The position numbers were made by a program, and so were the translations under genes. From Macrostomum lignano (taxonomy: Eukaryota), in assembly GCA_002269645.1 (NCBI GenBank), contig NIVC01000227.1, positions 434,001-498,000 of the forward strand: a stretch of 64,000 nucleotides of DNA, in the 5' to 3' direction. Numbering within the stretch: the first letter of the stretch is position 1; each line of letters opens with the position of its first letter. This document shows positions 27,058 through 63,577 of this stretch, in pieces. The notes beneath the pieces were generated by a model that searched no databases, was not told the origin of the DNA, and worked only from the letters and a program-made list of their open reading frames with translations.

Positions 27058-30008
27058 TCATTTGCCCGCCGACCCCAGTAAAGTCATGTCCGAAGGCGGC
27101 GGAGGAGGCGGCTTGTCCGGCTTTTCGAGCACGATGACCCGCTTGGGGTACTGCTGCAGCTCCACGACCAGCAGCTTCAGCTGCCAGGACTTGTCCTCAG
27201 CCTGCGGCGGGGTGGGGAATGGACGGGTCTTGGGACCTATTTTGAAACCTGAAATTCAGTTTGAGCCTATCCTGAGCACTGAATCTCACTCTGAATCTAT
27301 CCTGAGCACTGAATCTCACTCTGAATCTATCCTAAACCCTGAATCTCACTATGAATCTATCCTGAACCCTGAATCTCACTATGAATCTATCCTGAACCCT
27401 GAATCTCACTCTGAATCTATCCTGAACCCCGAATCTCACTCTGAATCTATCCTGAACCCCGAATCTCACTCTGAATCTATCCTGAACCCTGAATCTCACT
27501 CTGAATCTATCCTGAACCCCGAATCTCACTATGAATCTATCCTGAACCCTGAATCTACGATTATTTGAACGCCGAATCTCACCCTGAATCTATTCTCCTG
27601 AACCTAAAAACCTCAAACTGAATCACATACTTAATATACCAAAAATCTAATCCAGAACTTAGCCTGAACAATTAACCTGAACCTAGCCTGAACCATTAAC
27701 CTGAACCTAGCCTGAACCATTTACCCTGAACCTAGTATTAACATTAATCCTGAACCTAGCCTGAACCATTAACCCGGAACCTAGTCTGAACTTAGCCTCA
27801 ACAATTAACCCTAAACCTAGCCTGAACCATTAACCTGAACCTAGCCTGAACCATTAACCTGAACCTAGCCTGAACCATTAACCTGAACCTAGCCTCAACC
27901 TAGCCTGACCCATTAACCCTGAACCTAGCCTGAACAATTAACTTTGAAACTAGCCTGAACAATTAAGCCTGAACCTAGTCTGAACAATTAACCCTGAACC
28001 TAGCCTGAACCATTAACCTGAACCTAGCCTGAACCATTAACCTGAACCTAGCCTGAACCATTAAGCCTGAACCTAGCCTGAACCATTAACCTGAACCTAG
28101 CCTGAACCATTAACCTGAACCTAGCCTGACCCATTAACCCTGAACCTAGTCTGAACAATTAACCCTGAATTTAGCCTGAACCATTAACCTGAACCTAGCC
28201 TGAACCATTAACCTGAACCTAGCCTGAACCATTAAGCCTGAACCTAGCCTGAACCATTAACCTGAACCTAGCCTGAACCATTAACCTGAACCTAGCCTGA
28301 ACCATTAACCTGAACCTAGCCTGACCCATTAACCCTGAACCTAGTCTGAACAATTAACCCTGAACCTAGCCTGAACCATTAACCTGAACCTAGCCTGAAC
28401 CATTAACCTGAACCTAGCCTGACCTATTAACCCTGAACCTAGTCTGAACAATTAACCCTGAACCTAGTCTGAACAATTAACCCTGAACCTAGTCTGAACA
28501 ATTAACCCTGAACCTAGTCTGAACAATTAACCCTGAACCTAGTCTGAACAATTAACCCTGAACCTAGCCTGACCCATTAACCCTGAACCTAGTCTGAACA
28601 ATTAACCCTGAACCTAGTCTGAACAATTAACCCTGAACCTAGCCTGAACCTAGCCTGAACCATTAACCTGAACCTAGCCTGACCCATTAACCCTGAACCT
28701 AGTCTGAACAATTAACCCTGAACCTAGCCTGAACCATTAAGCCTGAACCTAGCCTGAAGTATTCTAGTCCCCTAAAATAAAAAACGCACCTTAACTCCCT
28801 GAGCATAGACGTCGGCCCTATTGAACTGTCCAACCAGGTGGAACCTGAGCGACATCACTCGCTGCCCAGTCTCCGAGTCCAGCGACTCCTCAGAGTGGAC
28901 TCGACTGCGCGACCGGCGCGAGCTGCCGTCGCCGTGCGAGCGAATGGGTTCGCCCAGAGCCGCCTGGACCTGCGGATCTTGAAGGCACCTCTCGGTGGCC
29001 AGAGACTGCAGCGCTGTCGGGGACTCGCTGGAGTAGAGCTCGCGCCATAGGGCGTAGAACAGACCGCCTGTGACCAGCACGCCAGCCAGCACCACCAGAG
29101 TGTAGCCGAAGTCTTTGGATCCTTCCACAACTGGCAGTGGATGGGGGGCATGGTGTTAAATTAATGCGTAGCTACCTTGTGTAACACTTACAAGCGTCTA
29201 TGGGTAATCACCAAGTGTCTATGGGTGATGCACCAAGTGTGTCTCTGGGTGATGCACCAAGTGTGTCTATGGGTGATGCACAAGTGTGTCTATTGGTGAT
29301 GCACCAAGTGTGTCTATTGGTGATGCTCTAAGTGTGTCTATGGGTGATGCACAAGTGTGTCTATGGGTGATGCACCAAGTGTGTCTATGGGTGATGCACC
29401 AAGTGTGTCTCTGCAGTCTCTACTAGTGTCTGCATGGTGTCATCGACTAATTTCGCTACACGGATGCTTTCAAGATTGTTTATCAACTGTCAAATTTGAG
29501 TAATCTGTGAACATGGAGTTTGCAGACTTTCGCAACTTCTGTGGGTTAGAGAGGAGGCTCAGCAGTGTTGTGGTGGGGTAGAGATGCTGGTATTTTATTT
29601 GATTCTTGAACTTTTTGGCTGATGACATACTGACATACAAATTAATTAAAATTGATTTCAAATCACGCGTTGTTTAAGCCTGCCTTTTTCTACTGCTAAA
29701 TTTGCAGACAGTACTGCATACCTTAACTAATCAATATGAACTACACAGTACAAGCCACCCAGTCATAGAGATAAGAATTATCACAAAACAGAGCTTCTGG
29801 CAAGGGTCTCCACAGAAAGAGGGCCTTCAAATCGAACAAAAAATCGATAATAAGCACTGGCTGGCGGGGTAGAAACCATATAGAAACAATATTCCAGAAT
29901 GTGACAATACCTTTCTGAGCTGGAGTCAGGTTAGCATAGCTCTGACTGGGCGGTCGCTCACCAAATATCACACTCTTGCTCAGCTGCTGAGCGTGATCAG
30001 TTTGTTTC

Positions 30009-30049
<41 letters not shown>

Positions 30050-30279
30050 TTGATCAGTAGACTGATAGCGGCGAAGGCACACAGAGTTTATTGCTCTGGC
30101 ATTTGAAGCCCCAGGGTTGCTATGACAACGTTTGAAAAGCGCCGCCCTCGCAGCCACCACCAAACCGTGCCCAGAGACGGGGCCTCGGAGCAAGACAAGA
30201 GACTGGAAAAAATTAATCGGAAAAGCAGCTCAGAGAAAGATCAGTACAGAGATAGCCAAGTGCATGCGATTGATACCAT
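27058..30279 (-). CDS. TIMM21: Mitochondrial import inner membrane translocase subunit Tim21, 259 aa
   Basis: join(30279-30277, 30202-29911, 29130-28790, 27201-27058) = 780 nt in frame. Arg-rich presequence, KDFGYTLVVLAGVLVTGGLFYALWRELYSSESP TM region, ALGEPIRSHG, C-terminal LVVELQQYPKRVIVLE, all matching recalled Tim21 motifs. The ATG-only first exon is tentative. Confidence 0.88.
27265..27560. repeat. Minisatellite, 30-bp unit (GAATCTCACTCTGAATCTATCCTGAACCCT), TIMM21 intron
   Basis: About 10 copies. Confidence 0.93.
27655..28758. repeat. Minisatellite, ~24-25-bp unit (CCTGAACCTAGCCTGAACCATTAA), TIMM21 intron
   Basis: About 45 copies. Confidence 0.95.
29200..29410. repeat. Minisatellite, ~24-bp unit (GTGTGTCTATGGGTGATGCACCAA), TIMM21 intron
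   Basis: About 9 copies. Confidence 0.92.
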
Positions 30280-30545: not shown

Positions 30546-31115
30546 ATGAGCACCTTCAAGAGCAGCGGTGGCAAGGGTGTGGATCTCTGCCTGTCCTGGG
30601 TCAACGCCGCCAACGGCGAGATCCCGGCTGGTGCCGTGAGCATCGGTGGCGACGTGTTCGTTGCCAGGTGCTTCAGCGATGGCGAGCTGCTGCCAGGCAA
30701 GGTGGCCGCCGGTCACAACAGCTGCTACGCTCCCTATGATGGCGAGGAGAAATGCTGCGACACCTACCAGGTGAGTTGCCATGGATCCTCAGTGATCCAG
30801 CAGTGCGCATATTCACCTCAGGCTAAATTATTGACGCTCTGACAGGTGCTCTGCGAGACCTGCAATCACGGCCTGACTGGCGGCCCAGGCTTCGAGTGGG
30901 TGGCCTGGAGCGGCAACACGGCCCCCAAGCACGCCCTGATCAGCGGCAGCGACCAGGGCCGGCCGCTGTACGTGGCCAAGGCCAACATTGACGGGGAGTG
31001 GTGCGCTGGCAAGTACATCCCGGACTATGGCAAGGCCTATTTCTCCTGCGGCGGCGCTGAGCACGAGAAGGAGGACGACTTTGAGGTGCTGGTGATGTGC
31101 ACCCGCTCCGGCTGA
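30546..31115 (+). CDS. DM9-repeat (DUF3421) protein, 164 aa, two DM9 repeats
   Basis: join(30546-30770, 30846-31115), phase-0 intron. Repeat motifs W..AANGEIPAGAV...FVAR...LLPGKV and WVAWSGNTAPKHAL..G.DQGRPLYVAKA...AGK...FEVLV; AATAAA near 31163. Confidence 0.88.
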
Positions 31116-31707
31116 GCACAATTGACTCAACAACAAACAGTCAAACTTCTCAAACTAGTTTAAATAAAATCACTAGGATCCAGGCTGTACACGTAGCAAG
31201 ACTCAGCAATGAGAATAAGAACAGAAGAGGCGATGTGATTATTCAACATATTGCATATTTATTAGGATACTATATTACACAATAAATATATACAATAGCA
31301 TAACCAAGCTACAAATACTTAGTGCCTTTATTCAAACACGATGCTTTTTATCATTTGTCTTTGCTACAAATTATAAGCAATGATAAAACTATAACAAAAC
31401 TCAATACAAGCCAAGTATCTGCCTAATAAAACAATTGTAAACCATTTGGACATAAAACAAAAGATAAAAACAAAAACATTATAAATACACTCGTAGGTTA
31501 AAAATATATAAATATATACATATATATATATATCAACAATCACTACTTCTGTGATAAAAAATACTACTTTCAATAGTAATTAGAGTGCCTTTTGCAATTC
31601 CAACCCTTGAAGTTGGTATTTTTGTTCAATATGGCTAGTAAGACAAATTAAAATCAAAAGTTTTTTTATTACACAAAATCTAAAAAACTACTAACAAAAG
31701 CATACAT

Positions 31708-31860
31708 GTGCAACCTATTGATTCACCCGGCCGTTTCTATTGGCAACACACATGTAAGTCGCTATTGGCTGAGAGCAGTCACGTGACTACTATTCTGTCC
31801 AATAGCGACTTACATGTGTGTGTTGCCAATAGAAACAGCTGGGTGAATCCCTAGGTTGCG
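31708..31860. mobile_element. ~150-bp palindromic MITE-like hairpin
   Basis: ~60-bp arms (GATTCACCC..TTTCTATTGGCAACACACATGTAAGTCGCTATTGG and its reverse complement) around a central AGTCACGTGACT. Confidence 0.8.
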
Positions 31861-33310
31861 CCCAAGCATGAACAAAAGTATGTTACTGTTTTTACATTCT
31901 ATACTGCTGGCTTCATGGAACTGCTTTTTGACAATACTTGATTCAATATACAAGCTTATAAGAGCTTTTGAGTTACCATAAGCATCAGTATTTAGTAACA
32001 AAAGGCTAAGATCTTTAGAATAAAACAAATAAAATATTTTTATATTTTGAATTATCTATAAAACAAGAGGGATACAAGTTGACTAATAGGACACTTTTAC
32101 AATAGTAATGGAAATATGCTTGTAGCACAATGAATTTAACTATGAATAATGAATGAATGAATAATATCAACAAGGAGCTTTGTGATTTTATATCTTAATT
32201 TTTTCTTAATTGATTACAAATACAGAAATCTTAAAGAAGCTTATGAGATTTAGGCCCAAGAATAAAGGCTAGACAAGTAGGAGTTTTTGTCAAGTTGAGT
32301 AGTGAGTTGAGTTTTGTTGCCTTAAGTTAAGTATTTTTTAGTTGTTTTAGTGAATACTTTAACAAATATTTCTTACCAAAAACCAAGATTTTCTGCTTTT
32401 AACAATGAAAAAATATAGTTTTTTGTCTCTTTATTGCTACCACCCTGTGTTACAACAGTGCAATGTTATTACTTCAGAAATTGATAATACTACTTGTTAC
32501 TACTTGCTATGTAGTAGTAGTATAGCTTGTGGCTGACTCTTATTTTAACATGATCAAATCTTGTTACAACCATTATGATACCTTTTGTCCTAAAAACTTA
32601 ACTAAAACTTAACTTGACTCTACTTTTTTCCTAAACTCAGCAAAGTTGTTTTCATAAAAAGCTTGGGTAGCCTGACTTGAAAGCTGAATATTTGTTTAGC
32701 TATTCCAGAAAATACAAGAAAAATCATTTTAGCTAGTATTATGCATCTAAGTAATTGAAATCTTTTTAATACATATAATAAAAATAATAACTACACTAAT
32801 AAAAATATAAAGTCTAGTTCAATTTAATAATAACTATTGATTTAATAGTCATTTTTTATTTAAAATATTCAATAGTTTGGCATACTTATAAGCATTAGTA
32901 ATCAAAAACTTATGTTAAGAATTATTCTACCTAAACCTAAAAAGGGTTCTATGTCTCTATTTAAGTTTAGGTTAATAAAATCAATGCCCATAAAGAATCT
33001 TCCCATTTTAAACTCTTCTAAAATGGATAAAATGGATGCATACATTAGCCCTTCATAGTTCATTGGCATACATATTTGGCATGCTTGAATCATAAAAAAT
33101 TATATTTGGCATACAAAAACTGGCATGCAAAACAATATGAAAACTGTTACAAGAATGTTCCAGATTTTGTAACAAAAGGTTGTATAGTTTCTAAGGAATA
33201 TATTGTTTAAAAAGTGAAAAAAGAACCAACATAGAATATGTGGAAGTGTAGCTTGTCTAACAAATAGTAGGAAAATAAACGTCAACACAAACATAAAATA
33301 AAACATTTCT

Positions 33311-33358
33311 TTTTAGCCAACGTGTTTTGTCAAACACAAGATGTCGTCAGGGCAAATT
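33311..33358 (-). ncRNA. Degenerate minimal hammerhead ribozyme in the inverted pLTR (left copy)
   Basis: Minus strand TTTGCC-CTGACGA-CATC-ttgtgttt-GAC-AAAAC-ACGTT-GGCTAAA; CTGACGA intact, GAAA mutated. Confidence 0.55.
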
Positions 33359-33942
33359 CAATTAACTTTAATTCACAACACCAATATATTTAAGCAAAAC
33401 AAACTGTACAGTCCAAAGGTGGGTCAAAACAGTCCGGTAGAATTTCAAAAGTGCCAAGTACATAACAAAGGGAGAGAGAGAGAAAATAGGCATGGCTCTG
33501 CTCACAGCACTCTCAGCTCACGCTCCATCCCATTGTTTCCTACATTGGAAAAACGAAGCGACACCTGCACACTAGAGCTAGGGAACATTGGCTAAAAAGC
33601 TCTACGATTAATGACCATCTGCTGGTTTGTAAAAAATGTTGTGACAATGAACTGATTCAGCTTTTTAAAGTGCTGGATGGGTGCAAATTTGACCATAAGC
33701 TTAAGATTATTGAAGCTTCTTATATCAGAATGCACAAACCCAACTTGAATGTGCAGCTTGCTGGCAATGGGGTGGAGCGTGAGCTAAGAGTACTGTGAGC
33801 AAAGCCATGCCTATTTTCTCTCTCTCTCCCTTTGTTATGTACTTGGCACTTTTGAAATTCTACTGGACTGTTTTGACCCACCTTTGGACTGTACAGTTTG
33901 TTTTGCTTAAATATATTGGTGTTGTGAATTAAGGTTAATTGA

Positions 33943-33990
33943 ATTTGCCCTGACAACGTCTTGTGTTTGACGAAACGCATTGGCTAAAAA
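33943..33990 (+). ncRNA. Degenerate minimal hammerhead ribozyme in the PLE pLTR (right copy)
   Basis: TTTGCC-CTGACAA-C-GTC-ttgtgttt-GAC-GAAAC-GCATT-GGCTAAA; core changes G8>A and in stem III. Confidence 0.6.
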
Positions 33991-34599
33991 GAAAAATTTT
34001 ATTTTATGTTTGTGTTGACGTCATACATGCGCAACTTCTGAAATTACGCTGGCCGTGCGACTTAGTTTTCGATAAAAAATGCGACTTACCTATAAAAGAG
34101 CCAAGCAAAAACTTTAGGTAAACGGCAGGAGTAACTATGACCATATTTTTAAAGCTAAATGCCTCGCCAGCTAATTAGTGCTGCGTGCAGATTCGGCGTT
34201 TTTATAACAGCTAATCAGTATGTCATCTAGTGGCGGCATGAAGCAATTAGTAAATTGTCAGTACAGTGTAGTGAGCATACTACAAAAGTCATGATTCATG
34301 AATGTCCAGAAGTAAGTGAAGTGAATACAGTGTGACCTATAGCTCAAGAACGATTTGCTAGACGATTTGGCATGGAAGATGAGAGCCCTGATTCAGATGG
34401 CTCATCAGATGCAGAATACGAATCCAGTAGAGATACAAGCTGTGAAAACCCACAGATTTTTAAACCACTGAATTCTAATTCCCGGAACTATTTTTGCATA
34501 GATTCTAAATTTGAAGTCATGCTCAAACAAAAACTTGTTATTTGTTAACAGTTATGAAAAAGGCAAAGATGGGAGTAATGCATGTTAAACTAAGATTTG

Positions 34600-35090
34600 A
34601 GGCCTTTGCAAATTCTCTCCATTCCTCAATCTTCTCATCCTCTTTTTCTTTTCTCTCTCATCCCTTATCCCTTCTCTCTTTCCTCTCCTCTCTCCTCTCT
34701 TTCCTCTCCTCCCCTATCTCTTCTGTCTCCTCTCTACTTTCTTATCTCTCCTCTCGTCTCTCTCCATTCCACTCTACTCTCATCTTATCTTCCCTCTCGT
34801 CTCTCTCCACTCTACTCTCTCATCTTATCTCTCCTCTCTTTTCTACTCTCTCATCTCTCCTCTCTTCACTCTCCTCTCATCTCCTCTTTATCCTCTCTTC
34901 TCTCATCTACTCTCTCCTCTTTCCTCTTTCCTCTCTTCTGATCTCATCCATCATCTTTTCTTTCCTCTTTCCTCTCATCTCCTCTTCTCTCTCATCTCTT
35001 TTTCCTCCCTCAGCTTTTCTCTCCTCTTCTATCTTTTCTCCCATCGCATCGCTCGCCTCTCCTCTGTTTGCTTATCTCTAATCTTCTATT
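34600..35090. repeat. CT-rich low-complexity tract, followed by a GA-rich tract at 35140-35290
   Basis: Nearly pure pyrimidine run on the plus strand. Confidence 0.9.
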
Positions 35091-35139
35091 CCCTCTACTT
35101 TGAAGTAAGAAAATATGCACATATTTTTGCTGAAGATAA

Positions 35140-36240
35140 GAGGAGAGAAGAGGGCATTGAGGAGAAAGGGTAGAGAGAAAGGGGGAGAAGAGAGGAGAGT
35201 AAAAATGAGAGGAGAGAGAAGAGGGAAAAGGGGGAGAGAGAGAAGAGGGGAGGCAAGGTAGAGAAGAAGAGAGAGATGAGAGTTGAAGAGACACCAACCT
35301 AAGTAATGTTACCAACCTTAAGAAAGTAGTGTTACTTTTGCTTGGTGTGGACATATGGACAGTCACACTTGCATGTGCTTGCTGTCATTTGAAAGCGGCA
35401 AGTCTCTTCTTTAAAATGACACCAATTGCAAGAGATTTGAATCTGTGCTTCAAGAGATATGGACGATTAAGTAGAGAAAGGTCAGTCATAGACTTACAGA
35501 ACCTTAAAAATGTCAACAGAAAACTTTTATCACGAGCGTAATTACTCCAGAAAAAACAAAAAACACAACAGTACAGTACAGAAGCAGGTGAAACAGATAA
35601 CAAGCAAATTATCACACAAGCGAACAACATTAAAATCATTCATCGGTTGGCAGACTTGTCATCTTGCTGACAGCATGGTCGCCATGAGCTGTGCAAAGTT
35701 GCCTGTGGATGTCAGCCGATTTGGTTCCGGAGCTCCAAAGTGTAAAGATGGCATGTCGCTGCCCAGTCTTTGAATGCACATCCATTTGCAGTTCACAATT
35801 GAAAATTGAATGTCAATAAACTTTGCAGGCGCAGCAGAAGCAGTTTTACAAGTCTCGTAGTTTTATGAGACAGCCCCTCTCGTCCACTGCATCACATTTG
35901 GCCATAGACAGCCCATGATTACGAAAAAATCAATAAAATCGTAAAAGTTTTCTGTTGACATTTTTGAGGTTCTGTAAGTCTATGACTGACCTTTCTCTAC
36001 TTAATCGTCCATATCTCTTGAAGCACAGATTCAAATCTCTTGCAATTGGTGTCATTCTAAAGAAGAGACTTGCCGCTTTCAAATGACACCAAGCACATGC
36101 AAGTGTGACCGTCCACACGTCCACACCAAGCAAAAGTAACACTACTTTCCGGACGCCCCTCGTAGTTAGGAAGTTTCAAAGAACCCGAGGGGCGAGGGCC
36201 AGATAGAGGGGCTTCGCGAGCCGGAGTTTGCCAACCCCTG
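35140..36240 (+). mobile_element. hAT/Charlie-like MITE (copy 2), interrupted by a mariner derivative
   Basis: GA tract ending ACACCAACCT, then 3' part 36165-36240 (GAAGTTTCAAAGAACCCGAG...AGTTTGCCAACCCCTG) followed by CTCCAGAG. Confidence 0.6.
35322..36164 (-). mobile_element. Mariner-derived foldback element with 208-bp inverted arms and transposase N-terminus
   Basis: Arms 35322-35529 and 35942-36149. Right end reads TA|CGAGGGGCGTCCGGAAAGTA (mariner-type TIR). The spacer from ATG 35785 reads MDVHSKTGQRHAIFTLWSSGTKSADIHRQLCTAHGDHAVSKMT, a mariner HTH-like sequence. Confidence 0.8.
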
Positions 36241-36369
36241 CTCCAGAGTTTAAGAAATCAATGGGAAACTGTTGACGCGGGCTTCTGATTTCAAAGATCT
36301 TGTCTGTTGTTGAAGGCTTCTATTCTGTTTTTGCTCTCCTGCCACACTTGCACCTACTACCCCCTGATT

Positions 36370-37240
36370 GCCTCTGATTGTGACTTACTTCCCTCTTATT
36401 GCGACTTAGTTGCTTCTTTTTGCGACTTACCTAATCCTTTTTGCGACTTACCTAATCCTTTTTGCGACTTACTTAATCCTTTTTGCGACTTACCTAATCC
36501 TTTTGCGACTTACCTAACCCTTTTGCGACTTACCTAACCCTTTTGCGACTTACCTAATCCTTTTTGCGACTTACTTAATCCTTTTTGCGACTTACCTAAT
36601 CCTTTTTGCGACTTACCTAATCCTTTTTGCGACTTACCTAACCCTTTTGCGACTTAACTAATCCTTTTGCGACTTACCTGATCCTTTTGCGACTTACCTA
36701 ATCCTTTTGTGACTTAGCTGATCCTTTTGCGACTTACCTGATTCTTTTTGCGACTTACCTAATCCCTTTTGCGACTTACCTGATCCTTTTTGCGACTTAC
36801 CTAATCCTTTTTGCGACTTACCTAACCCTTTTGCGACTTAACTAATCCTTTTGCGACTTACCTGATCCTTTTGCGACTTACCTAATCCTTTTGTGACTTA
36901 GCTGATCCTTTTGCGACTTACCTGATTCTTTTTGCGACTTACCTAATCCCTTTTGCGACTTACCTAATCCTTTTTGCGACTTACCTAATCCTTTTTGCGA
37001 CTTACCTAACCCTTTTGCGACTTACCTGATCCTTTTTGCGACTTAGTTTGCTTCTTTTGCGACTTACCTGATCCTTTTTGCGACTTACCTGATTATTTTT
37101 ACAACTTAGTTTGCTTCTTTTGCGAATTGTTTTTCTTTTGCTTCACGATTTTCCCTGAACTGCTCTTTTTTTTCGCTTTCCTCTTGCCTTTCTTGGTTCT
37201 TGTGTTTTTCTGTTTTTGGTTGACTCAATTTTGTGACTTA
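36370..37240. repeat. ~21-bp tandem array (TTTTGCGACTTACCTAATCC), subterminal repeats of the hAT element
   Basis: About 40 copies; the same GCGACTTA motif occurs at 34058 and 34082 near the left TIR. Confidence 0.9.
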
Positions 37241-40200
37241 CCCCTGGTCAGCCACGATTTACGGTGGCCGGATCGGCCAGGTCGGCCAGCAGTTGCGCAT
37301 GTATGGTTGACGTTTCTTTTCTTACAACATAGAATATCTATATATTTATTACATGTGCTAATATTTTATATTTTAAATACTTATTAGCTATCTGAAATTC
37401 TTTTGATTACAAACTATCCAAAGGTGAAATAGATATGATAAGATTCTTTGTTATAATTTACACATAAAAATTTTAAATGTGGCAATGCAAAAAAGGTTCT
37501 TTATTGCTATAGAATAAGGTCATAGAGTTTTGAAATTTTAGTGTATATTACAAAATCATATTTCCAAATTTTTGCATATTTGGCATATACCTAAAAGTTA
37601 GCTTCAAAACAACAATAGAATATATCTTCTTTGTCACAGCAGTGTGCCTTAGGGCCAAGTCACAAATGAATGCCACACTATGAGCTGAATCCAGGGCATC
37701 TGTGTCAGCCAATAGGCAGTCAATGAAACACATCAAATGTGCGCCTGTCCTCATTAGTATAGTGCTTATAGCATTAGTAGTAGCATTTCCTACACTGGCT
37801 ACAAGTAGTACAACTTGGTACAGATGATGTAGCCTGTTATCTAGAGTTGCGAATAGTGCAAATAGCCTAAAAACTCTGGTGTACACTAGACACCTTCCTG
37901 ACACTTTTGACAATAGCATAGGCCTATTCCACACTCCAGATCATGTAGTATAGGCCTAAGTCATAAAATTAAGTTGGATTTATATAGCATTAAGTAGCAG
38001 GCCTAGTATGATTTCAGAGATAGCACATATTATATCATATATTGAAGGTCTTTCTTTAAGGAAAAGTAAGTTCTCATTGGGCCTACACTAATTTTGAGGT
38101 AAATAAAATGTCATGAACTTGATGAAGCCTTAACACTTTCTGTTTGAATATTTAATTTAGGCTAATAAATTATTTTTGTTGGTGACAACAACGACCAAAA
38201 ACTAAATCAATGGGGTTCATTTAATTAATAAAATATATATAAAAATGGCTTGCATAGCAATAATACCATAAGTTTGCATTTAAAAATTCTAACACAACTC
38301 GAAACTTTTTTCTACATCTTGTTACTTTTCATTAAAAAACAACAGTGCTTCACCTAGCAATAGCCTAGCCTAGCAATAGCCATTGGTAGTATAGAAATGT
38401 CATAAATTATTTTATCAATAGGCCTATTCTATACCCCTAATATATAGAAAGTCAAAAATGATTACATACATGTGCATAATTCATTATGAAAAGAAAATCG
38501 AAAGCAACAGCCTTTTAATTTTTTGCAATGATAATAATGCTAATTAGTTATTACTGTAGCAGTGTAGCTCAGATAGCATATGTTGTCACTGAAATTTGAA
38601 GCCATTTTCTTGGAAATTATTTTATCGAATATAATCGAAAATTAACAGTTAAAAAAATTAACAAATTATACCTACAAATATCGTTTCGGTGTGAAAAAAA
38701 GATAAATATTATGCTTCAAGTTTTGAGCCTTCAAGTCCTAAAACATTTTTGCGGTTAAAGGTCTGCATACGTTCGACAATTTTGGGGGCGCTATAGCGCC
38801 AGCATCAGATAAGGCAGTCGCACAATGCAGCACCAAAGGTCCAACTACAGTGGTCCTTAGCAAGTAACTGATGTGATTGTAAGACAGTGAGTGCACTAGG
38901 GCCGGTCCGGTTGAGGCTCTATCCGTACCTGCAGCCACAGTTCTTTTGTCTGGCACTGATCGATGCACCCATTGTTTTTGGACCCCAGCGTTGACTAAAG
39001 CGGTTTCCCGTCCTGCACCCAGCTCTCTGAGAGGCATTACGATTTTCGATTTACTCTCTATCTTAACCGATCCAACCCTTGGGACCCAGCCAATAGAGGG
39101 TCTAATTAGGAAACTGTCTGCTATATATAGTAACATCGAGTATGAAGGGCTAATACTACATGGTATACATCTGGCCGTTATCTGCACGCTTTTTGTTTAA
39201 TACATAAAGGTTTGAAGGACTGGAAATGAACAGGAGAACAGAGAACAGAGAAATCACACGATCTATAGCTAGACCAATGGAGCCCGGTTAAACGTTACTA
39301 TCGGTTGGAAAAAACTGCCTGCAACAAGCCACATCTGGATTGTCATCCTCACAGATGGATATGTGATCTCATTCAATGGCAAACCGATCGGAGCACCTTG
39401 TGGAAAAGAAATTCAAGCAATTACTGTCAAATGGAGATTGACGATTTCGTGCTGCCCGACGATATATTGACCTTCATGATGGCATATGTTCGCGATTTAC
39501 TGCGTGCGTAGCGTTGATCGAAGACCTCGAAAGATTGACAGACGAGCTAGAATAAAGCGTCACGAGTGTCAAATAAGACGTCAGACGGATCAGTGTCAAA
39601 AAGTTGTTCAACTTCATGGCATCGACACCGTCTTTAAAAATTGACTTGATGACGGCTGAGCCGGAGGACGTCAAACGTGGGCTGCGATTGATCTACGGCA
39701 TACATGTACGTTTCGTAAGCCAGACGGCGGATATCATTCGCAAGCTTTGCTAATTTACGCACCTTTAATTTACCCAAATGACCCTATAGTTTAATGTGGA
39801 CATTATTGCCAAAGTGATGTTTCTCATACATCTCAATTGTTTGTTAAATTGTCCCGTTGAATTGTTATATAAAAACTTGTAAAAACCCTAACCATAGCCC
39901 TAACCCTAACCTTAACCTCTATCTATAGTACTTCTATAGAAATATCCCCGCCGTTCTTATGGTTGAATGGTAACCAGCAGTCTGCCGATCCTCTCCTTCT
40001 CTTCTTTCTCTCCCCTCTCTTTCTGTTCTCTCCCTCTCTCCTTCTATTCACTCCCTTTCTCCTTTCCTTCTCGCTCCTTCTCTTTGTTTCCTTTCTTTCT
40101 TTTTAGATCCCTTGTCAAAAGCTTTCCCTGTATTTCATTATATAGAATGCTTGTCGGCTTTTTCTTTTCAACTCCCATAATAGCTCGTGACTGTACACTC

Positions 40201-40353
40201 CGTAACGACCCTATCAACAAATATCTCAGTGCGAATCACTCACTCCTGTTTGTACATGTACCTTTGTATCCAAGCACAGCGCTTCACCAGCAACTTTCTG
40301 CTTTGGATCGGTTTTCCTCTCAACAAGCTCTCTCTCAAGTTCCCTCTCTAACC

Positions 40354-40751
40354 CAAGGGTCGGAGAACCCAGAGAACCCAGAGCATGACTGCGGACAGAG
40401 GAGGGGAGACAGGAGATAGAAGAGAGAAGAGAAGAGAGGAAAGGAGAGAGGAGAGCGGAGAAAGCGAGGAGAGAAGATGAGAGGAGAGGAGAGAAGAGGA
40501 GAGGAGAGGAGAGAAAATGAGAGGAGAGGAGAGAAGATGAGATTAGAGGAGAGAAGACAAGAGGAGAGAGGAGAGGAGAGAAAAGAGAAGAGAGGACAGA
40601 GGAGATTAGAGAAAAGGGAGCTGAGAAGACAGAGGCACAAACCTTGAGCGGGACGGATTGCTACTGTGAAGTTTAAATCAAAGGATCCGAGGGCCGGATA
40701 GAGTCTTTGCGGGTCGCATGTGGCCCTCGGGCCGGAGTTTGCCGTCCCCTG
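40354..40751 (+). mobile_element. hAT/Charlie-like MITE (copy 3, complete) with GA-rich core
   Basis: Ends CAAGGGTCGGAGAAC / GTTTGCCGTCCCCTG; perfect 8-bp TSD CTCTAACC (40346-40353 and 40752-40759). Confidence 0.9.
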
Positions 40752-42168
40752 CTCTAACCGCTCTCTCTCAAACACGATCAGCTCTATCTTGAGGGGGTAG
40801 AAAAGTATTGCTTTACAGATTACAGCGAAGAAATGGGCTTGAAAGCTCTAAATCTAAATTTAGAGCCAACAGTTCCATTTGTACGCGAGTGCATTCATGT
40901 ACCTGCAGCTGGTTATAACTATAACTTGCATTAGAAACTGGTTTTAAAACGCTATAGATAACGTCGCTCTTTAAAGAAACCGTTGGCCTCTCTGGAGAGA
41001 GGATCTTCTCTTTCTGGAAAATGTACTTTCTACTGGGGTAATTATTACCTACAAGTCAAATGGACAGCAAATTCAAGTAAGTCCACGGTGGGAATTCCGA
41101 CATTCCGACATCTGGAGATCGCTAGCAAATGTCAATCGGGTGACGCGGCGTCATACGTCGGCTAAACGTCGGTGAAATATGAAAGAACCCGTTTGTTAGA
41201 CGTCGCTGACATCGGGTTGCTGTACGGGAATAGGTCATAGGTATAGCTATCGATTCATACCGCTTTTAATTGCACTTTTCACGATCAACTGGTCGCATTA
41301 AACTTTAATGGGATGTAGCCACGACGACAAAACTAGGCAGGCCTAGACCCATGGCCGTTAAGCATCTGAGCTAACGTGTAGCTAGTGAAAGATATATGTA
41401 GATGATTTTAAGTCAATGGTTCCCTGCTCCTAACAGTGTCGGTTTCTAATACCCCTTTTGCTTCCTATTTGGCTTTTACAGCGTTCAAACGGGTGCGTTG
41501 AAAAACCCATAAAAATTCATTTTTACCATAGACTAAGAACTGAAATCACTACGGAGGCTATTTGGTCTATTCACTATCAGTTTAGTTGGTTTCACGAACA
41601 TCAAATTCCAAACATCTACATTCACGGTCCTCTCTGTCTATCCGACTGGTTTTAGCGTAAGGTCCTCTACACCATTCTTTATGTTAGTCTAGGAAAACTG
41701 AGTCAAGTCATGTTTGCAAGCGAAGGAGAAAACCATTGAAAGATCTCTACCGAAGTGACGAAAGTATTTATTTGACTACATAACACGAAACCACGTACAT
41801 TAGTAGCCAAACGCCATCCGATTGGCTGGGGGTTAAAACCATGCACACTGGCAAGCACAAATGTACACAGGCAGGGGTAAAACGATAGCGCGCAAGAATG
41901 ATCAGTCACGGGAGAGAGAGAGAGAGAGAGACAAGTGAAACAACATGAAAAACCAAAGTACAACCCCAACACTTTACTTTGACGTGGCCCAAAGTTCCAG
42001 TTAAAACCAACTTGATTTCTGTTGCCTAGGGCTTTCTATGGTTCGTCTAGGTACGTGCTCGTAAATATTTAAAACAGACGGTTACATTAATCTGCTACGT
42101 TAAAGTACTCATCTTTTCAATGCTTTTAAGACTTAAACGCGTTTTATAAGTTACTGCTTTTGTTTTAG

Positions 42169-44141
42169 AGCCCTTCCCAGTGACCGAGAGTTGAGCCAGC
42201 AGCTGCACTCGGCGCTGACTCAGTCAGGATTCGTGGAATCCAGAGCTGCTTTGCAAAGCGCTGTTGCTGACGTGTTGCAGGATATCCTAAGGAAAAGAGA
42301 TCACAATGAGCTCTTTGTAGTAGGCAGCTTCTCCGATGGCTGGGGCAATAACTTTAGGACCCTGGACGGCAGAACTGATGTTGACGCCGACATTGACATG
42401 ATGAGGCTGATCCCCGACAAAACGTATCATCCAAGAGGCATTTGCCAGTGTGATGGAGCGTACATCCAGCATGAGTATCGCAACGGCCACATTCAGTGCT
42501 TCGGATTTGGTGAGACTTCACTTTTAATGCCTGGGCTTCTTTGCGGGATAAAAATATTCCAATTCCAAATGACATATATTGATCAATTAATGTAAACCCA
42601 ACTTAACCCAGACTCTTTGATTCCTCGAAATGGTCATTTACGCGAAAGTGGGTCAAATTCCCAAACATTACAAACATTATGCAAATGTTTGTACTATGCA
42701 TTTTCACTGTACCAAACAATTAAATAACATTGGGACGAAAAATCTGACCAAATCTCACGAGAATGGTTTGTCTTTACCTTGGGTCATAAATGCGCTCCGT
42801 TTGTGTTGCGTATTTTTCTTACTTTATGAATATTCAACCAGTGGTTAATAGTTATTTAATATTAATTTAAACACTACCACAGCCGCTAAAGGGTCGAGTA
42901 CGGCTCTCGCGTCGCCAGGGTCCGCCCTAAGACCCGCCGTGGACCTGGTTTTCGCTTGTCGTCTCTGCCGCTATCCTCAAATCGTCTCGCTATCCAAATT
43001 TTTCGAGCCCGTGAGACGGTCGCTGGAGCAGGATTTAGAATCTGCCTCTCTGCCTTGTCACGTGGTGCTGGCAGCCTCACCTGGTCAAAAAGGAAAGGAG
43101 CTACGTGCGAGCACTAGCTTCCTTGAGAAGCGAATGTTGCGAAGCTTAACAACTATTCAAGGTCAGCTGTTCGTCACACTTAAATATCTAGTCAAAAAGG
43201 TCATCTGTGACAAGTATGGCTTTAATGTAGAAGGTCTGAAGTCTTTCCACGTGAAAATTATTGCATTGCAAATGGTTCAGGAGACACCAATGGAACAATG
43301 GAAGCCCGAGAATCTCGTGACGCTCACGAGACAGGCGCTGCAGATGCTGCTCGACTGCATAGAAGATAGCAACACGCCTGAAAACACTGATGGTCGGATT
43401 TTGAGTCATATCTTTCTAAGAGATGCAGCAGTGTACCTCAAGGGTGCAGTTTTTGGGGACAGAAACTGGACGGATCAGACGTTGAGAAGCATCGCAAGCA
43501 CATTAAAAGCTGTGATAAATCGGCTGCCACAGCACCTGCTGCAGTTTATTGGCAGTCTCAAACGAGTGGTTGAGCTAGACAGGTTTTACTTCCATCCGTT
43601 TCAAATCCTGCCGGATCTGAGTCCCAGGTCCGTCGCGAATTCTAACGGCCCGGTAGAGTACCATGAGATCTACGACCTGGTGAGGAAGTGCGTTGCGCAA
43701 CTCTCTTTCGAAGATTGTCCAGCAACATCCCGGGAGTCTCTCGTGAATCTGATTGCCAGGCTACCAGACTGCGCTCGCTCAGCACGGGAGGCACTCAGAG
43801 CTCTGTTGCACTTTAAGTTCGGTGATCTTAACTCCGCATTGGAAGTTCTAAGAGAGTGCAGCGGCCACGCAGTAAGCAGAGGTATTCCGTGGTCTGCTTC
43901 AAGGCCAGCTACCGAATTCACTGCAGAATATGTGTGGTGCCACCTGAAGAGTGTCGATTCTGCGTGGAGGTTCTGCTTTGAGTTCGATCAATTGCCGAAG
44001 TTTAATTTTTTGACAAAATCTTTGGCAGACAGTTATCCTACTCAAGTCAAGGATATTTGTGAAAACTACTTTTACTTGGACTTTGACAGACTGCTATTGG
44101 CGTTGCGACTCGAGCTCGAGTTAAAATTTGAACAAAGGTAA
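42169..44141 (+). CDS. Mab-21/cGAS-like nucleotidyltransferase (cGLR-like), ~530 aa, apparently intact
   Basis: Exons 42169/42171-42509 and 42883-44141 join in phase 1. NTase motif VVGSFSDGWG...DADID, third acidic AVDLV, CHVV, SFLEKRML, LKYLVKK, LKSFHVKI, W.PENL (Mab-21 C-lobe). Possible start exon ATGGTTCGTCTAG|GT at 42038-42050 is uncertain; the ORF end overlaps an AG|GTAAGT donor, so a further exon is possible. Confidence 0.8.
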
Positions 44142-45011
44142 GTATGCCAATTTTATGTGAAAATTTCTCACTTTTTGATGGAGAGAATCAGAATATTGAT
44201 CAGTCTTTTGTTTGATTTTTTATCAATATCGTGATAAATTTCGGCCTTTTCGGCCCCCTTTGTGGGGAAGCCTTCGGGCCTCAGGTCTCAGAAATAAATC
44301 ATGCAATTAGAGTCCTGGCCCCCCACTCCTGTCAGATAGTCAGCCCCATGGTAGCTTGATCGTGTGGCGAGCAGTCTAGGTCCTATAGCTAAGAGAGGGA
44401 CAGCGAGAGACAAGCAGGGAGAATTTTGAAGGTAGAGATCAGCTAATCCGCAGATTAACTAACCCGCTGCCACCAGCCCCTGTGTCCTGGCTCACCAAAC
44501 CGGACTTTCGAAATCGGGCTTCCGACTAGAGGGGGCTTTGCACTTACCTGCCAACTAGTGTCTTTTTGCTGTCAATCTCGAAGTCATAGCCGATGATAAG
44601 GGACTCTGCTGGGACTTGATCGCATTGGCCATGCAGGTACAGAGGGGACTTGTGCAGGGGATTCTTGCAGTGGCGAGACTATGGGGTAGCTACATGTACT
44701 ATTACATAGCTAAATACGAGGAATTGTACTTTTGGCCTTCAACGTGCCAACTAGCCTCTCCTAGCGCTGATAATAGACTAACTCGAACTTCAGAGACCGC
44801 ATGATTCATCACCCGAGCCGCTTGGCTAACCTAGAGTGCACAGAGTACATCTCTGGAGCCGATTCTGCACTATTGGCAATTTCGTTAACTGATTTGATAG
44901 GTTAATCGACTGAGAACTGCCTTGCCATTGGCCCACTGTTACCGGCGCCTACTAGCTTAGCTACTCATCTGAGCCATCGGCGAACAAAGAAATAAAACCG
45001 ATAAAAATAAC

Positions 45012-45686
45012 TGTTAGATTTAACCTTCTCCTTAGATCACTTCACACTTCAGATTGTATTGGAGCTTCAGACTACTAGCAGTATTATTGAATGGCTTCTG
45101 CCTCAGCAACAGCACTACTGAACAAAATGAGCAAAAGTTTGCGCCTAATCCAGCTACTGAAACAGGGGACAGATAAGGAATCACCCAATCAAGCAAGTCT
45201 AGGTAGCCTCTCACCCAACCAATCAGAAACTCAACAGCCGGAGACCAGGTAATCCACAGTGACCGAATCGGCTTAGCGCTTCGCAGCTGTAGGCCCGTGA
45301 TGATGCTGTCACACACTTCGCAAATAGCTAGCAGGTGTTAATCTTGATGATCGTTGCTGTCGACCGGGGGAATTCGTTCTTGATGATGATGGGGGAAGTC
45401 GCGATCCGGGGATCAAGAGACGACGGTCGAGCTCCGGGAACCAGCAGTTGCGTACTGGGTCCGAGCAAGTTGAGGTCCGAGCGGCCCAAAAACACCGGTT
45501 TATAAAGCCGCCAACTGGATCGCAATTTGTTAGAATGGAACACCTCGACGCTGATTGGCTGAGCCGATTTGCTATAACTGACGTCAAATTTTCTGATTGG
45601 CTGAGCTTGTTGCCACCCAAACTAACGTGACCAGAAAATCCTATCAGTTCCCTCGGGGCCATAAAAATACGGCAGGTGCAGTCACA
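45012..45686. mobile_element. Candidate solo LTR (675 bp)
   Basis: TGTTAG...GTCACA termini; flanks AATAAC/AATCAC (5 of 6 match); internal TATAAA near 45504 and several ATTGG/CCAAT boxes. No clear poly(A) signal. Confidence 0.4.
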
Positions 45687-46092
45687 AATCACTCAAAATC
45701 GCTACATTATGATTCATGGCTTTTCTCGCAGTCATGTACTTTGGACAAATGAAGTTCGAAGAACGATACAATCTCAAGCTTAGCTCAAAAAGTGCTTATT
45801 TAATTTTTTCTAGTCGAAGAAATGCTGCGGATCAATTTAAAGTAGTCAAAATTTTGAATTCTAATACTGATAATTGAATGAAGCTACAGAAAGCTGAGTC
45901 AAACACCGATATTAATAATAAATATATTTGACATTCCATTTGGATTTTTTACGCTAAAATGATTTACAAACAAAACCCTATGTAATTGCACGGTGTTTTT
46001 TGACACAATCCATCCTTTTATTTATAATAGTAATCTGGTAAGAATGTTTAAAATATTTTGCTCAGTTTTTGAGTTTGTCCTTCAAATTTCAG

Positions 46093-47077
46093 AGGCTCTC
46101 TCTCCGACAGAGAGCTAAGCCTGCGGCTAAACTCGGCGCTCACTCTGTCCGGATTTGTGGAATCCAGAGCCGCTCTTCAGAGTGCAGCTGCTGACGTTTT
46201 GCAAGAAATACTGAGAGAGAGACAGGAAGCGATGAAAAAGTACACATGTATGGATTACGAAGCTACATGTACTTTCTTAGTCGGAAGCCACTCGGACGGT
46301 TGGGGCAACAACTTGACAGCAATAAACGGAAGAACTGACTTAGACTCCGATATGGATGTTGTTAGTCTGATTCCAAATAAAATGTTTCATTTGAAATCGG
46401 TGTGCCAGTGCGATGGCGATCCAGACCCGTACGAGCTGATGAACGGCCACATCCAGTACTTTGGATTCGGTGAGTTCCGCTGCATATGCAATTTGTTCCT
46501 TACCTACGTTTCTTTCTCTCTTGTGACGGATAATAAATTCAGTCGTAGGTTTTATAATAAATTTTTGTGTAATAGTTAAGGACCAGCGCCCCCAAATTCC
46601 CCTTCCCTTCCTGGTCCCTTTCAATCTGCGGAGTCAGCGGAATACAAAACATTTTTTCTTCAATCGAGCTCTTTACTGAGAGACTCAATTCACATCTACT
46701 GACCTGATATTTGTAAGCTAGAGAAATTCTGAAATCAACACCGATTATCTCGTCCTCAAACCATCTCTATCTCTACCAAGCTGAACAAAATATTTGTCAT
46801 TCTTTCTTCTGCTTTAAACCATTTATAGCTATTTTATCACTTTGTAGCATCGAGTCCTGCGATACCATTAACCGGGACAGCCCAGCGTCCAGCCGTGGAC
46901 GAAGTCTTCGTCCCCCGTCTTTGCCGGTACCCTCCGATTGCGCCCCTGGAGCTGAGCCGACCGTCAAACATTCCCCAGTCCGTGTTGCAGAGTCAAGACG
47001 CTCAATATGAGACCGGGAGTGAACGTAATTTATTTGCTTTTTGGCAGTCACCATACAAACAGCTAAGGAGAAATTAG
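46093..47077 (+). pseudogene. Truncated paralog of the cGLR-like gene (NTase N-lobe only)
   Basis: Exons 46093-46469 and 46848-~46993 have the same structure and phase as the intact copy (LVGSHSDGWG...DSDMD, PAVDEV...RLCRYP). Homology is lost at ~46993, stop at 47077. Confidence 0.8.
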
Positions 47078-47334
47078 GCAATAAACAAGAAGCAGAATAG
47101 CATATCGAAATGTTTAGTCCATCACTGAAGTCAGCCTGGCGGACTGCGTTAGAAGGCCATTCGATTTAAGCACCTGCCAAAGTGCCTCTGACAGCGGAGT
47201 TCCCATCTGGCCGTCTTCTCAGCTGTGATGACGAGGCCGACTGCCTCCCGTGCAATCCGCTCCAGCAGCATGAAGCGCCACTCCTTAGAGCGATAACTGA
47301 AGGCTTTCACACTCAGTCTCATATTGAGCGTCTT
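46994..47334. mobile_element. ~340-bp inverted-repeat-bounded element at the cGLR paralog breakpoint
   Basis: Perfect 19-bp IR AAGACGCTCAATATGAGAC (46994-47012) / GTCTCATATTGAGCGTCTT (47316-47334), extending imperfectly to ~29 bp. No TSD seen. Confidence 0.65.
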
Positions 47335-47769
47335 ATTCTCATTTTGATATTCCATTTTTTAGTCTATGGCCAAGCCATTCCTGCAGCCAAGACTGGGCAT
47401 GCTCTGGCCGTGGCTAGCCTGGCGTTGCTTGCGATCCTATGCAGTCTTATTTTGAATGTCTAAAGTCTTATCTAGAGCGTCAAAAGCTATACTAATCCTA
47501 GCAATATAGCAAGACAGCTTTAGTGTAGCAATGCCTACTAGTTGCGCATATGCAAGATCCTATTGAGTCTATTAGCTCGAACTAACGTTGATGCCTGGCC
47601 TACGGAAGAACTAACAGCGCGCGCGGGACACTCACACGGCAAAACTAACAAGAAACCAAATTTGAATCAGACCAAATTTGAACAAAGATAAATTAATGAG
47701 GGAAATTAATAGAAAAACAGAAAGAAACATGAGACCAAAAAAATATATTATTAACTATTAATTCCAACA

Positions 47770-47895
47770 GTAATCCTAAAACACAATAGAAAACTGCAAT
47801 AACAGGGTTCGCTCGCATTTTTTTCTATGCCACTTACTGGCTCATCGTCCCTGATCACCCTGTTATTGCAGTTTTCTATTGTGTTTTAGGATTAC
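47770..47895. mobile_element. 126-bp hairpin MITE-like element
   Basis: Perfect 38-bp inverted repeat (47770-47807 / 47858-47895) with a 50-nt loop. Confidence 0.8.
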
Positions 47896-47959
47896 GTGTT
47901 TTAGGATTGCGTTGGTGGCGACATCTTTGTTGCCGACGACGTCACACAACCATTCTCAC

Positions 47960-48184
47960 CTGGTAATCAGTGTAGGCCTTCTCCTCGGTGCCGTACGGTG
48001 CAAAGCAGAACTGGTGACCATTAGCCACCTTGCCCGGCAACTGTTCGCGCTCGTGTAGGCACCTGGCTACAAAGACGTCGCCACCAACGCACACAGCGCC
48101 ATCTGGGATCTCTCCATTGGCTGCTCTGATCCAGGACAGGCAGAGATCCACGCCTTTGCCGCTGCTGCTCTTGTAGATGCTCAT
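47960..48184 (-). pseudogene. Second DM9-repeat gene, exon 1 only (exon 2 missing)
   Basis: 225-nt exon of the same length and donor position as 30546-30770; 52/75 aa identical by hand count. No second DM9 exon downstream; an inverted DM9 fragment lies at 47908-47935. Confidence 0.8.
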
Positions 48185-48584
48185 GCTTTGCTTGCGTTTT
48201 TTCAAATGAAGATTATTGCCGAGTGCGGGTGTATCCGTTCTAGCCCGGTTGTAGAGCGGCCTAGCAATAGCTATTATACATGCATGCAGCACCGCAACCT
48301 CATTCAGTCATGCAGCTGGACGGAAAGGAAAGTTCTACGCGTCACTACTATTGCCTTGGCAATGATTTTCTTGCGGTGACTAATAAGCTAGCATAACCGC
48401 AAATGTATTTGTTACTGCAGTGTCAGCCAGTAAGTGTTTACGTGACTCTGCAGTTGCCTATTGAGAGTCGTAGCCAAGTGTCCAGAGTGCCATAAATGGA
48501 AAGTAAAAAGTTACCTACGCAGGATCGCTTAGTAGCAGGCAGGGAGAGCAGAACTAAATCTTGATAGTCTGACCCACGACGGCG

Positions 48585-63551: not shown

Positions 63552-63577
63552 GTGAGCGCTACGGATATGAGACTTTA

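Follow-up and report, generated by a model that had tools for sequence, protein, structure and literature searches.

DM9 and cGAS-like genes in an unstable interval between TIMM21 and CLTC of Macrostomum lignano

Gene content and copies of the locus

The window analysed here is a 64,000 bp stretch of Macrostomum lignano contig NIVC01000227.1, in which window positions equal L003 positions plus 20545. The interval between TIMM21 and the clathrin heavy chain gene (CLTC) was found to hold a two-exon DM9 gene on the plus strand, DM9(+), a two-exon cGAS-like gene on the plus strand (cGLR-a), a truncated plus-strand paralog of it (cGLR-b) and an exon 1 remnant of a second DM9 gene on the minus strand, DM9(-). 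The left flank, TIMM21 (27058..30202, minus strand; called gene at L003 6513-9657), carried minisatellites in an intron, and the ORF at 28772-29128 matched Pfam TIM21 with 76.6 bits. The right flank, CLTC (50470..64000, plus strand, start approximate), was mapped over from an L004 gene call and showed Pfam Clathrin repeats. Both calls confirmed the location between these two genes that had been given in an initial annotation of this DNA.

Three copies of the locus were compared: the window (NIVC01000227.1), a sister copy on NIVC01000111.1 (L004) and a third copy on NIVC01001703.1 (L001). The sister copy still had all four genes (two DM9, two cGLR), while the third copy kept both DM9 genes and showed no cGLR with tblastn. 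The segment with both cGLR genes (38760..46994, plus strand) was shared by the window and NIVC01000111.1 and missing from NIVC01001703.1. The third copy was colinear up to window 38760 (L004 3994); beyond this junction (L001 ~14725) it resumed at L004 ~12844-13206, and a small piece at the junction was inverted. It was a mosaic when compared with the sister copy, with an identity of 84-92% in its left part and of 96-100% in its right part. Overall, the three copies of one locus clearly illustrate presence/absence and deletion variation in a recently duplicated genome.

DM9 genes

Exon 1 of DM9(+) was read from the sequence at 30546..30770 (75 codons, ending in CAG/GTGAGT at phase 0) and exon 2 was located at 30846..31118, TGA stop included. 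The spliced product of 164 aa was 100% identical to the annotated protein BOX15_Mlig020479g1 (P0029). It scored 119.3 bits with Pfam DM9 (PF11901), whose cut-off is 26.2, and its two DM9 repeats both aligned to oyster DM9 lectin structures (PDB 5id8 and relatives). The dN of DM9(+) was 0 against each of the two other locus copies, and the gene is under strong constraint. DM9(+) is probably a small two-repeat DM9 lectin without a signal peptide, and homology suggests mannose-type glycan binding. Carbohydrate (mannose) binding or microbial recognition has been reported for DM9 homologues (PMC5712788, PMC8106982), as have immune roles of DM9 proteins in other organisms (PMC5712788, PMC8106982, PMC12379375).

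DM9(-) consisted of exon 1 only (48184-47963, minus strand, 74 codons), exon 2 having gone with a 5.5 kb deletion. Intact homologues were found at L004 17008-16787 plus 14882-14658 and as a 163-aa gene in the third copy. The initial annotation had described one intact and one truncated DM9 gene on opposite strands, and both descriptions agreed with these gene models.

Gene structure of cGLR-a and cGLR-b

Exon A of cGLR-a (42169..42509, plus strand) started at the acceptor ttttag/A in phase 2, had no ATG and carried the GS ... DIDM portion of the active-site motif. Exon B (42883..44141, plus strand) contributed the third Asp of that motif (VDLVFA) as well as the helix bundle of Mab-21_C and a helical extension, and the TAA stop at its end overlapped a consensus donor (AG/GTAAGT). 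The ~65-aa C-terminal tail of the family was missing from cGLR-a; no tail exon was found downstream of 44141 at E ≤ 10, and the tail was absent from the window and the sister copy alike. In canonical paralogs the ankyrin exon precedes the NTase exons by ~0.5 kb. It was present in L005-L009 and L011 and absent in the sister copy and L010, and a tblastn search of the window with three ankyrin regions (E ≤ 0.01) found none. The local cGLRs do not have the Macrostomum ankyrin-cGLR architecture of an N-terminal ankyrin exon and a C-terminal acidic tail.

No complete frame with a start codon was obtained for cGLR-a, as exon A lacks an ATG and, unless spliced, the frame ahead of it is closed. A scan for an in-phase ATG plus donor produced three first-exon candidates in 11 kb, one of which (41060-41076) was identical in the sister copy. 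The number of candidates was no higher than chance, and this mini-exon is at most a candidate start; an ATG at 42039 with the donor AG/GTACGT was rejected because of its wrong phase. A read-through splice from cGLR-a to cGLR-b (donor 44137/44138, acceptor 46092/46093) was in frame in the window and was also rejected; it is not conserved, because in the sister copy a TAA precedes the donor by three codons. cGLR-a was missing from both public protein annotations, and its best database match was 60% identical. Its closest paralog, P0001, is likewise annotated as beginning at the exon equivalent to exon A, which suggests an unrecognised 5' end and not decay. Overall, the assignment of this gene to the cGAS-like (cGLR) family by the initial annotation held, while its description as intact is unproven given that ATG, ankyrin exon and C-terminal tail were all lacking.

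For cGLR-b, exon A (46093..46471, plus strand) was an open frame with GS and DMD motifs, and of exon B the deletion had left a remnant of the first ~49 codons (46848..46994, plus strand). These two pieces correspond to the truncated plus-strand paralog noted initially. cGLR-b in the sister copy carried independent lesions, and the gene may be truly decaying. The substitutions available for dN/dS of cGLR-b (5.5 synonymous and 9.5 non-synonymous changes) were too few to decide.

Probable enzyme identity and constraint of cGLR-a

The active site of cGLR-a read VVGS53, 20 residues, D74-I-D76-M, 55 residues and V-D134-L, in agreement with the published cGLR motif h[QT]GS X8-20 [DE]h[DE]h X50-90 h[DE]h (PMC9980059). 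The sole deviation was V in place of Q/T ahead of GS, which is common to the catalogued M. lignano members. In the family alignment G52, S53, D74, D76 and D134 were nearly invariant, and cGLR-a keeps all catalytic residues. Pfam reported Mab-21_C alone, at 19.5 bits and below the 24.1 cut-off, with no match to the Mab-21 N-terminal domain, and phmmer against the PDB gave a weak hit to cGAS (E ~0.5). Alignment with PAA86972.1, cloned as a cGLR by Li et al. (PMC9980059), extended end to end with 36% identity over 421 residues (E 6e-68). The AlphaFold2 model of cGLR-a had a pLDDT of 86.9 and a pTM of 0.86, and its best Foldseek matches in the PDB were cGAS and Cv-cGLR1 (8gjw) with probability 1.0 and a TM score of ~0.55-0.6 on the target. 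By its predicted structure, cGLR-a is homologous to known enzymes of the cGLR/CD-NTase type.

Frames of ~530 codons were open in both the window and the sister copy of cGLR-a. Comparison of these two copies showed 34 synonymous and 25 non-synonymous changes, a dN/dS of 0.21 (binomial P 8e-9), and differences of 20/11/29 at the three codon positions, with an excess at the third. Divergence between the copies was 3.8% in exons and 3.5% in introns overall, and the constraint on cGLR-a is therefore moderate. Its intact catalytic motif, modelled fold and constraint suggest that cGLR-a is probably an active nucleotidyltransferase of the cGAS-like type, producing a nucleotide second messenger. Since the gene is unannotated and starts at no identified codon, it is the constraint that has to argue for its being functional.

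The Macrostomum cGLR expansion

Li et al. 2023 (PMC9980059) catalogued ankyrin-cGLR proteins of M. lignano, among them PAA86972.1, PAA45980.1 and PAA68676.1. The same paper reported that most flatworms have no cGLR, in contrast to the expansion in M. lignano, and described immune roles of cGLRs in other organisms; its main text lists no M. lignano enzyme among the active enzymes ('Macrostomum' appears 0 times there). The family comprised 89 representatives of 50%-identity clusters at E < 1e-10, and M. lignano was the source of 8 of the 10 representatives checked, i.e. every family-proper member looked up by name. The local cGLRs are members of this very large, Macrostomum-specific and already published ankyrin-cGLR expansion, the scale of which is the more interesting biology. 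What is new here is modest, namely two unannotated, ankyrin-less cGLRs of a known, catalogued expansion.

Deletion, insertions and repeats in the interval

At the deletion junction (46995..47305) 311 bp of the window stood where the sister copy has 5.5 kb (L004 10629-16140), so that window 46994/47306 corresponds to L004 10629/16140. The first 112 bp of the junction were an inverted copy of L004 16057-16168. In this one deletion of ~5.5 kb, cGLR-b lost its 3' part and DM9(-) its second exon. Compared with the sister copy, the window also had a ~3.3 kb insertion (34021-37299) and a ~1.5 kb insertion (44230..45735) between cGLR-a and cGLR-b. Two foldback inverted repeats (33279-34021 and 35322-36149) were located at and inside the larger insertion.

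The interval had been described as a transposon-dense island. ORFs of the 31-48 kb region contained no transposon protein domain, and minisatellites, the two foldback inverted repeats and indels were found instead. The proposal that both gene families had duplicated and decayed locally survived in part. Duplication was supported, the ancestral arrangement having two genes of each family; independent decay in both families was not, as DM9(-) is intact in the other two copies. The reading of the locus as a product of birth and death is weakened because the single 5.5 kb deletion, absent from the sister copy, cut both truncated genes. Truncated neighbour genes can share one lesion, which is a warning for similar loci.

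Linkage of DM9 and cGLR genes

Eight other M. lignano loci (seven cGLR, one DM9) were sampled, each to ±10 kb. No DM9 was found within ±10 kb of the seven cGLR loci (L005-L011), and no cGLR was found at the only other DM9 locus, present as two copies (L012/L013). A DM9-cGLR linkage was thus seen at 0/7 and 0/1 of the other loci, and the third copy of the present locus keeps its DM9 pair with no cGLR, against the pairing put forward in the initial annotation. At the loci sampled, the pairing failed the check that the annotation itself had proposed, namely linkage at other loci. The caveat entered there, chance accumulation in a dynamic region, was the better reading. The annotation had also held that such a linkage was not known to be described, and no paper linking DM9 with cGAS or cGLR was found. 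A DM9-cGLR fusion transcript was considered and rejected. Splicing of DM9 exon 1, which ends in phase 0, to cGLR-a exon A, which needs two upstream bases, produced a stop after four codons, and DM9 exon 2 ends in a stop and has no donor.

Interpretation of the locus

The preferred interpretation, with a probability of about 0.7, is ordinary co-location in an unstable intergenic interval and not a functional DM9-cGLR module. An older convergent DM9 lectin pair would have occupied the TIMM21-CLTC interval, and a tandem ankyrin-less cGLR pair, derived from the large Macrostomum-specific ankyrin-cGLR expansion, would have come to lie between the DM9 genes. Adjacency would then be a by-product of the dispersal and duplication of the cGLR family into a repeat-rich, indel-prone interval, and the ~5.5 kb deletion with its inverted junction removed the 3' ends of cGLR-b and DM9(-) from the window copy. 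Counting against chance, two specific families within 20 kb are uncommon a priori and the arrangement was kept in two of the three locus copies. A functional immune module, in which DM9 lectins sense microbial glycans, the ankyrin-less cGLRs co-act or are co-regulated with them and the linkage is under selection, is quite improbable. It would be consistent with the immune roles of both families elsewhere, the dN of 0 of DM9(+), the retention of the arrangement in two copies and the lack of an ankyrin module, which might leave the local cGLRs to use another partner. However, the pairing was absent from the eight other loci and from the third copy, DM9(+) and cGLR-a lie 11 kb apart, their exons do not join in frame and the literature search found no link. 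If the linkage were real, a glycan lectin and cGAS-like signalling would be connected, a combination not described before. Least probable of all is the more specific proposal that the ankyrin-less cGLRs swapped their ankyrin sensor for an in-trans partnership with the flanking cytosolic DM9 lectins; if true, recognition of glycans would feed into cyclic-nucleotide signalling in a flatworm lineage whose cGLRs, unlike those of most platyhelminths, are massively expanded.

In another alternative the cGLRs are non-functional relics, copied in part from an ankyrin-cGLR gene (exons 2-3) and lacking both promoter and start codon, so that the locus would consist of one or two working DM9 genes and pseudogenes. 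This is unlikely, though it carries more weight than the other alternatives. The missing ATG, ankyrin exon and C-terminal tail, the absence from both annotations with a 60% best match, the different lesions of cGLR-b in its two copies and the near-equal divergence of exons and introns all fit relics, but the open ~530-codon frames with a dN/dS of 0.21 and third-position excess, the retained catalytic residues, the annotation of P0001 from the same exon and the in-phase candidate mini-exon at 41060-41076 argue for a gene. It is improbable that the deletion and the cGLR-free third copy are artefacts of long-read assembly and not real alleles or homeologs. Short inverted pieces at both junctions, the mosaic identity of the third copy and the 1-nt A-run difference, typical of long-read error, would fit such artefacts, but both junctions are internal to long contigs (of 120 kb and 700 kb) and their flanks are colinear, and replication-based rearrangements are likewise known to leave inverted pieces at junctions.

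Comparison with known systems

Multigene innate-immune clusters evolve by birth and death. The present locus resembles them in its tandem duplicates, its presence/absence variation between copies and its damaged copies; it differs in that both truncations in the window were one event and that DM9 and cGLR genes were unlinked elsewhere in the sample. DM9(+) resembles oyster CGL1/CgDM9CP-1 (PDB 5id8; PMC5712788) and Fasciola gigantica DM9-1 (PMC8106982) in its size (~140-165 aa), its two DM9 repeats and, by inspection, its lack of a signal peptide. Its sequence identity to the oyster protein is low, and sugar binding of DM9(+) is putative.

cGLR-a shares its predicted fold with mouse and human cGAS and Cv-cGLR1 (PDB 8gjw; ~390 aligned columns in Foldseek), and its catalytic triad and spacing fit the published motif as theirs do, whereas it is only 12-16% identical to them and has an extra helical extension of ~150 residues. 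The pI of cGLR-a is 7.3 for the whole protein and 8.58 for the first 345 residues alone, compared with >8.5 for nucleic-acid-sensing cGLRs (PMC9980059). Finally, cGLR-a is 40-60% identical to other catalogued M. lignano cGLRs and shares with them the GS...DxD...D motif, the Mab-21_C bundle and the long helical C-terminal extension, whereas the window genes lack their N-terminal ankyrin exon and 'DWIRDVAEREDADEQEL' tail and are not in the public protein sets.

Gene order and the DM9 genes

Axonemal dynein heavy chain exons occupied the left end of the window on the forward strand (1 to ~18 kb; positions 1-18000), followed to the right by several minisatellites, TIM21 on the reverse strand, the DM9/cGLR interval and, at the right end, the clathrin heavy chain gene CLTC on the forward strand. 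A Ty3/gypsy-like pol remnant with RT RNase H and integrase in a 449-aa ORF (6702-8051) lay on the opposite strand within the dynein gene. Long minisatellite arrays, built of 18-30 bp units repeated up to 54 times, were located at 21486-23017, 23724-24629, 27267-28758, 36395-37108 and 48581-49116, one within the TIM21 intron and another immediately upstream of DM9(-), and their copy numbers varied among the copies of the locus. Besides minisatellites, the interval had two foldback inverted repeats and, compared to the sister copy (NIVC01000111.1), insertions at 34021-37299 and 44230-45735. The features noted in the sequence by the initial annotation were real and its description of the region as dynamic was right, but a transposon-dense island was not shown, as no ORF in 31-48 kb matched a transposon protein family.

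The forward-strand DM9 gene, DM9(+), consisted of exons 30546-30770 and 30846-31118 separated by a 75-nt intron with donor CAG/GTGAGT. The spliced protein of 164 aa (Pfam DM9, 119 bits; pI 4.8) was 100% identical to M. lignano BOX15_Mlig020479g1, showed no amino-acid change compared to either of the two other locus copies and had no N-terminal hydrophobic signal on inspection. Structures of oyster DM9 lectins (5id8 and related entries) aligned with each of its two repeats. Only exon 1 of the reverse-strand DM9(-) was present in the window (48184-47963).

Comparison of the three locus copies

The sister copy (L002/L004, ~96-98% identical) had the full set of TIM21(-), DM9(+), cGLR-a, cGLR-b, DM9(-) and CLTC, with cGLR-b annotated as protein P0014 (BOX15_Mlig001763g2). 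L004 10629-16140 was replaced in the window by 311 bp, of which the first 112 bp (46995-47106) were an inverted copy of L004 16057-16168. With this single 5.5 kb deletion, cGLR-b lost the remainder of its exon B, DM9(-) lost exon 2 and part of its intron, and the spacer between the two genes disappeared. The truncations of both paralogs were confirmed, but they did not reflect separate decay of the two families; since the deletion spans parts of both genes, the two decayed paralogs are one event. cGLR-b was also damaged in the sister copy, where the acceptor and the first ~11 codons were lost and a 1-nt deletion was found in an A-run directly before the annotated ATG (L004 ~9990-10001). The P0014 model therefore begins at an internal Met just after the 1-nt deletion and leaves out the GS/DxD catalytic part, although that part can still be read upstream. 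Either genuine decay or an error of long-read sequencing could account for the lesion.

In the third copy, L001 (NIVC01001703.1), DM9(+) was retained, as was an intact DM9(-) of 163 aa lying about 8.4 kb from it, but a ~8.9 kb segment bearing both cGLRs (L004 3994-12844) was missing. The DM9 pair is therefore the stable component of the locus, while presence of the cGLR pair varies between copies. A small inverted piece was found at the L001 junction too (L001 14726-15028), so that a short inverted segment was common to both structural differences; such segments could be a signature of replication-based rearrangement or an assembly artefact. L001 was a mosaic relative to the sister copy, with 84-92% identity left of the junction and 96-100% right of it, which suggests recombination, gene conversion or chimeric assembly.

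Proposed DM9-cGLR linkage

A linked innate-immune cluster had been proposed for these genes. Search with tblastn for DM9 within ±10 kb of seven other M. lignano cGLR loci (L005-L011) gave no hit at any of them (0/7). Besides the genes at this locus, a profile search found a single DM9 gene in M. lignano (P0031), both copies of which (L012 and L013) adjoined two Grp7_allergen-domain (lipid-binding) genes and no cGLR. The proposed linkage is thus not supported by any sampled locus, and no papers joining DM9 with cGAS or cGLR were found in the literature search. DM9(+) and cGLR-a were 11 kb apart, and their joining by exon-skipping was rejected as it would be out of frame.

Overall, the reading that best fits the interval is an older pair of DM9 lectin genes among which two cGLRs of truncated architecture, belonging to a very large and lineage-specific family, would have been placed (or, in one copy, from which they would have been lost), with the single deletion following in the window copy.

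Coding status of cGLR-a

cGLR-a had two open exons on the forward strand (42169-42509 and 42883-44141), joined G/CC over a GTGAGA...CAG intron. The canonical family gene has three exons, namely an ankyrin exon of ~1.6 kb with the ATG, exon A about 0.5 kb on, and exon B, which includes a conserved acidic tail. Both the ankyrin exon and the C-terminal acidic tail were absent from the window and the sister copy. Exon A starts at an acceptor in phase 2 and has no ATG, nor does an open frame extend upstream of it; the gene had been called intact, which is unproven. cGLR-a was in neither public annotation. A candidate in-phase mini-exon at 41060-41076 was identical in the sister copy, although chance alone would yield candidates of this kind at a similar rate.

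Evidence against decay came from comparing the window and sister copies of cGLR-a, between which 34 synonymous and 25 non-synonymous changes were counted (dN/dS 0.21; binomial P 8e-9), with differences by codon position of 20/11/29. Constraint is moderate because exon divergence (3.8%) was about equal to that of introns (3.5%). On balance, cGLR-a is probably functional, with a 5' end that the two-exon model lacks.

The cGLR-a stop codon overlapped a consensus donor AG/GTAAGT (44137/44138) whose phase agrees with the acceptor of cGLR-b exon A (46092/46093), hence a tandem cGLR-cGLR transcript is possible from the window copy. In the sister copy, the stop was three codons earlier. A UniProt model of 1346 aa (P0033) had two cGLR domains.

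The cGLR family

At L005 (NIVC01001606.1), a 30 kb stretch contained two tandem ankyrin-cGLR copies, both complete, and a reversed partial copy, and the annotated gene of P0007 covered both tandem copies (about 19 kb). Two M. lignano models outside the window, P0080 and P0175 (PAA59752.1, PAA80948.1), each united ankyrin repeats, a caspase domain (Peptidase_C14) and a cGLR domain within one protein, and could be real sensor-effector fusions or merged neighbouring genes. A JGI metagenome contig of 2867 bp encoded a 504-aa member (P0019, 40% identity) of the otherwise Macrostomum-only family, presumably from flatworm DNA within the environmental sample.

In Pfam, cGLR-a matched only Mab-21_C at 19.5 bits (cut-off 24.1), and phmmer against PDB showed cGAS at E ~0.5. 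Strong homologues were many, and wherever the source gave a species it was M. lignano (best 60% identical). In a full HMMER scan, 89 cluster representatives (clustering at 50% identity) scored E<1e-10; among ten whose names were checked, all eight strong ones came from M. lignano, while the weak pair consisted of a Lingula protein and an ENA protein. Past about E 1e-7, proteins of other animals matched cGLR-a in the Mab-21_C region only. G52-S53, D74, D76 and D134 were nearly invariant in the family alignment, and the cGLR-a motif (VVGS, 20 residues, DIDM, 55 residues, VDL) fits the published cGLR active-site pattern with one deviation, V where Q/T is expected. The AlphaFold2 model (pLDDT 86.9, pTM 0.86) matched cGAS and Cv-cGLR1 in Foldseek with probability 1.0 and TM ~0.55-0.60 per target. 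cGLR-a was 36% identical (E 6e-68) to PAA86972.1, an M. lignano ankyrin-cGLR listed and cloned by Li et al. 2023, therefore the cGLR label is fair and the family is already catalogued. According to that study, cGLRs are absent from most platyhelminths, and M. lignano ankyrin-cGLRs were nevertheless listed and cloned (Li et al. 2023, PMC9980059).
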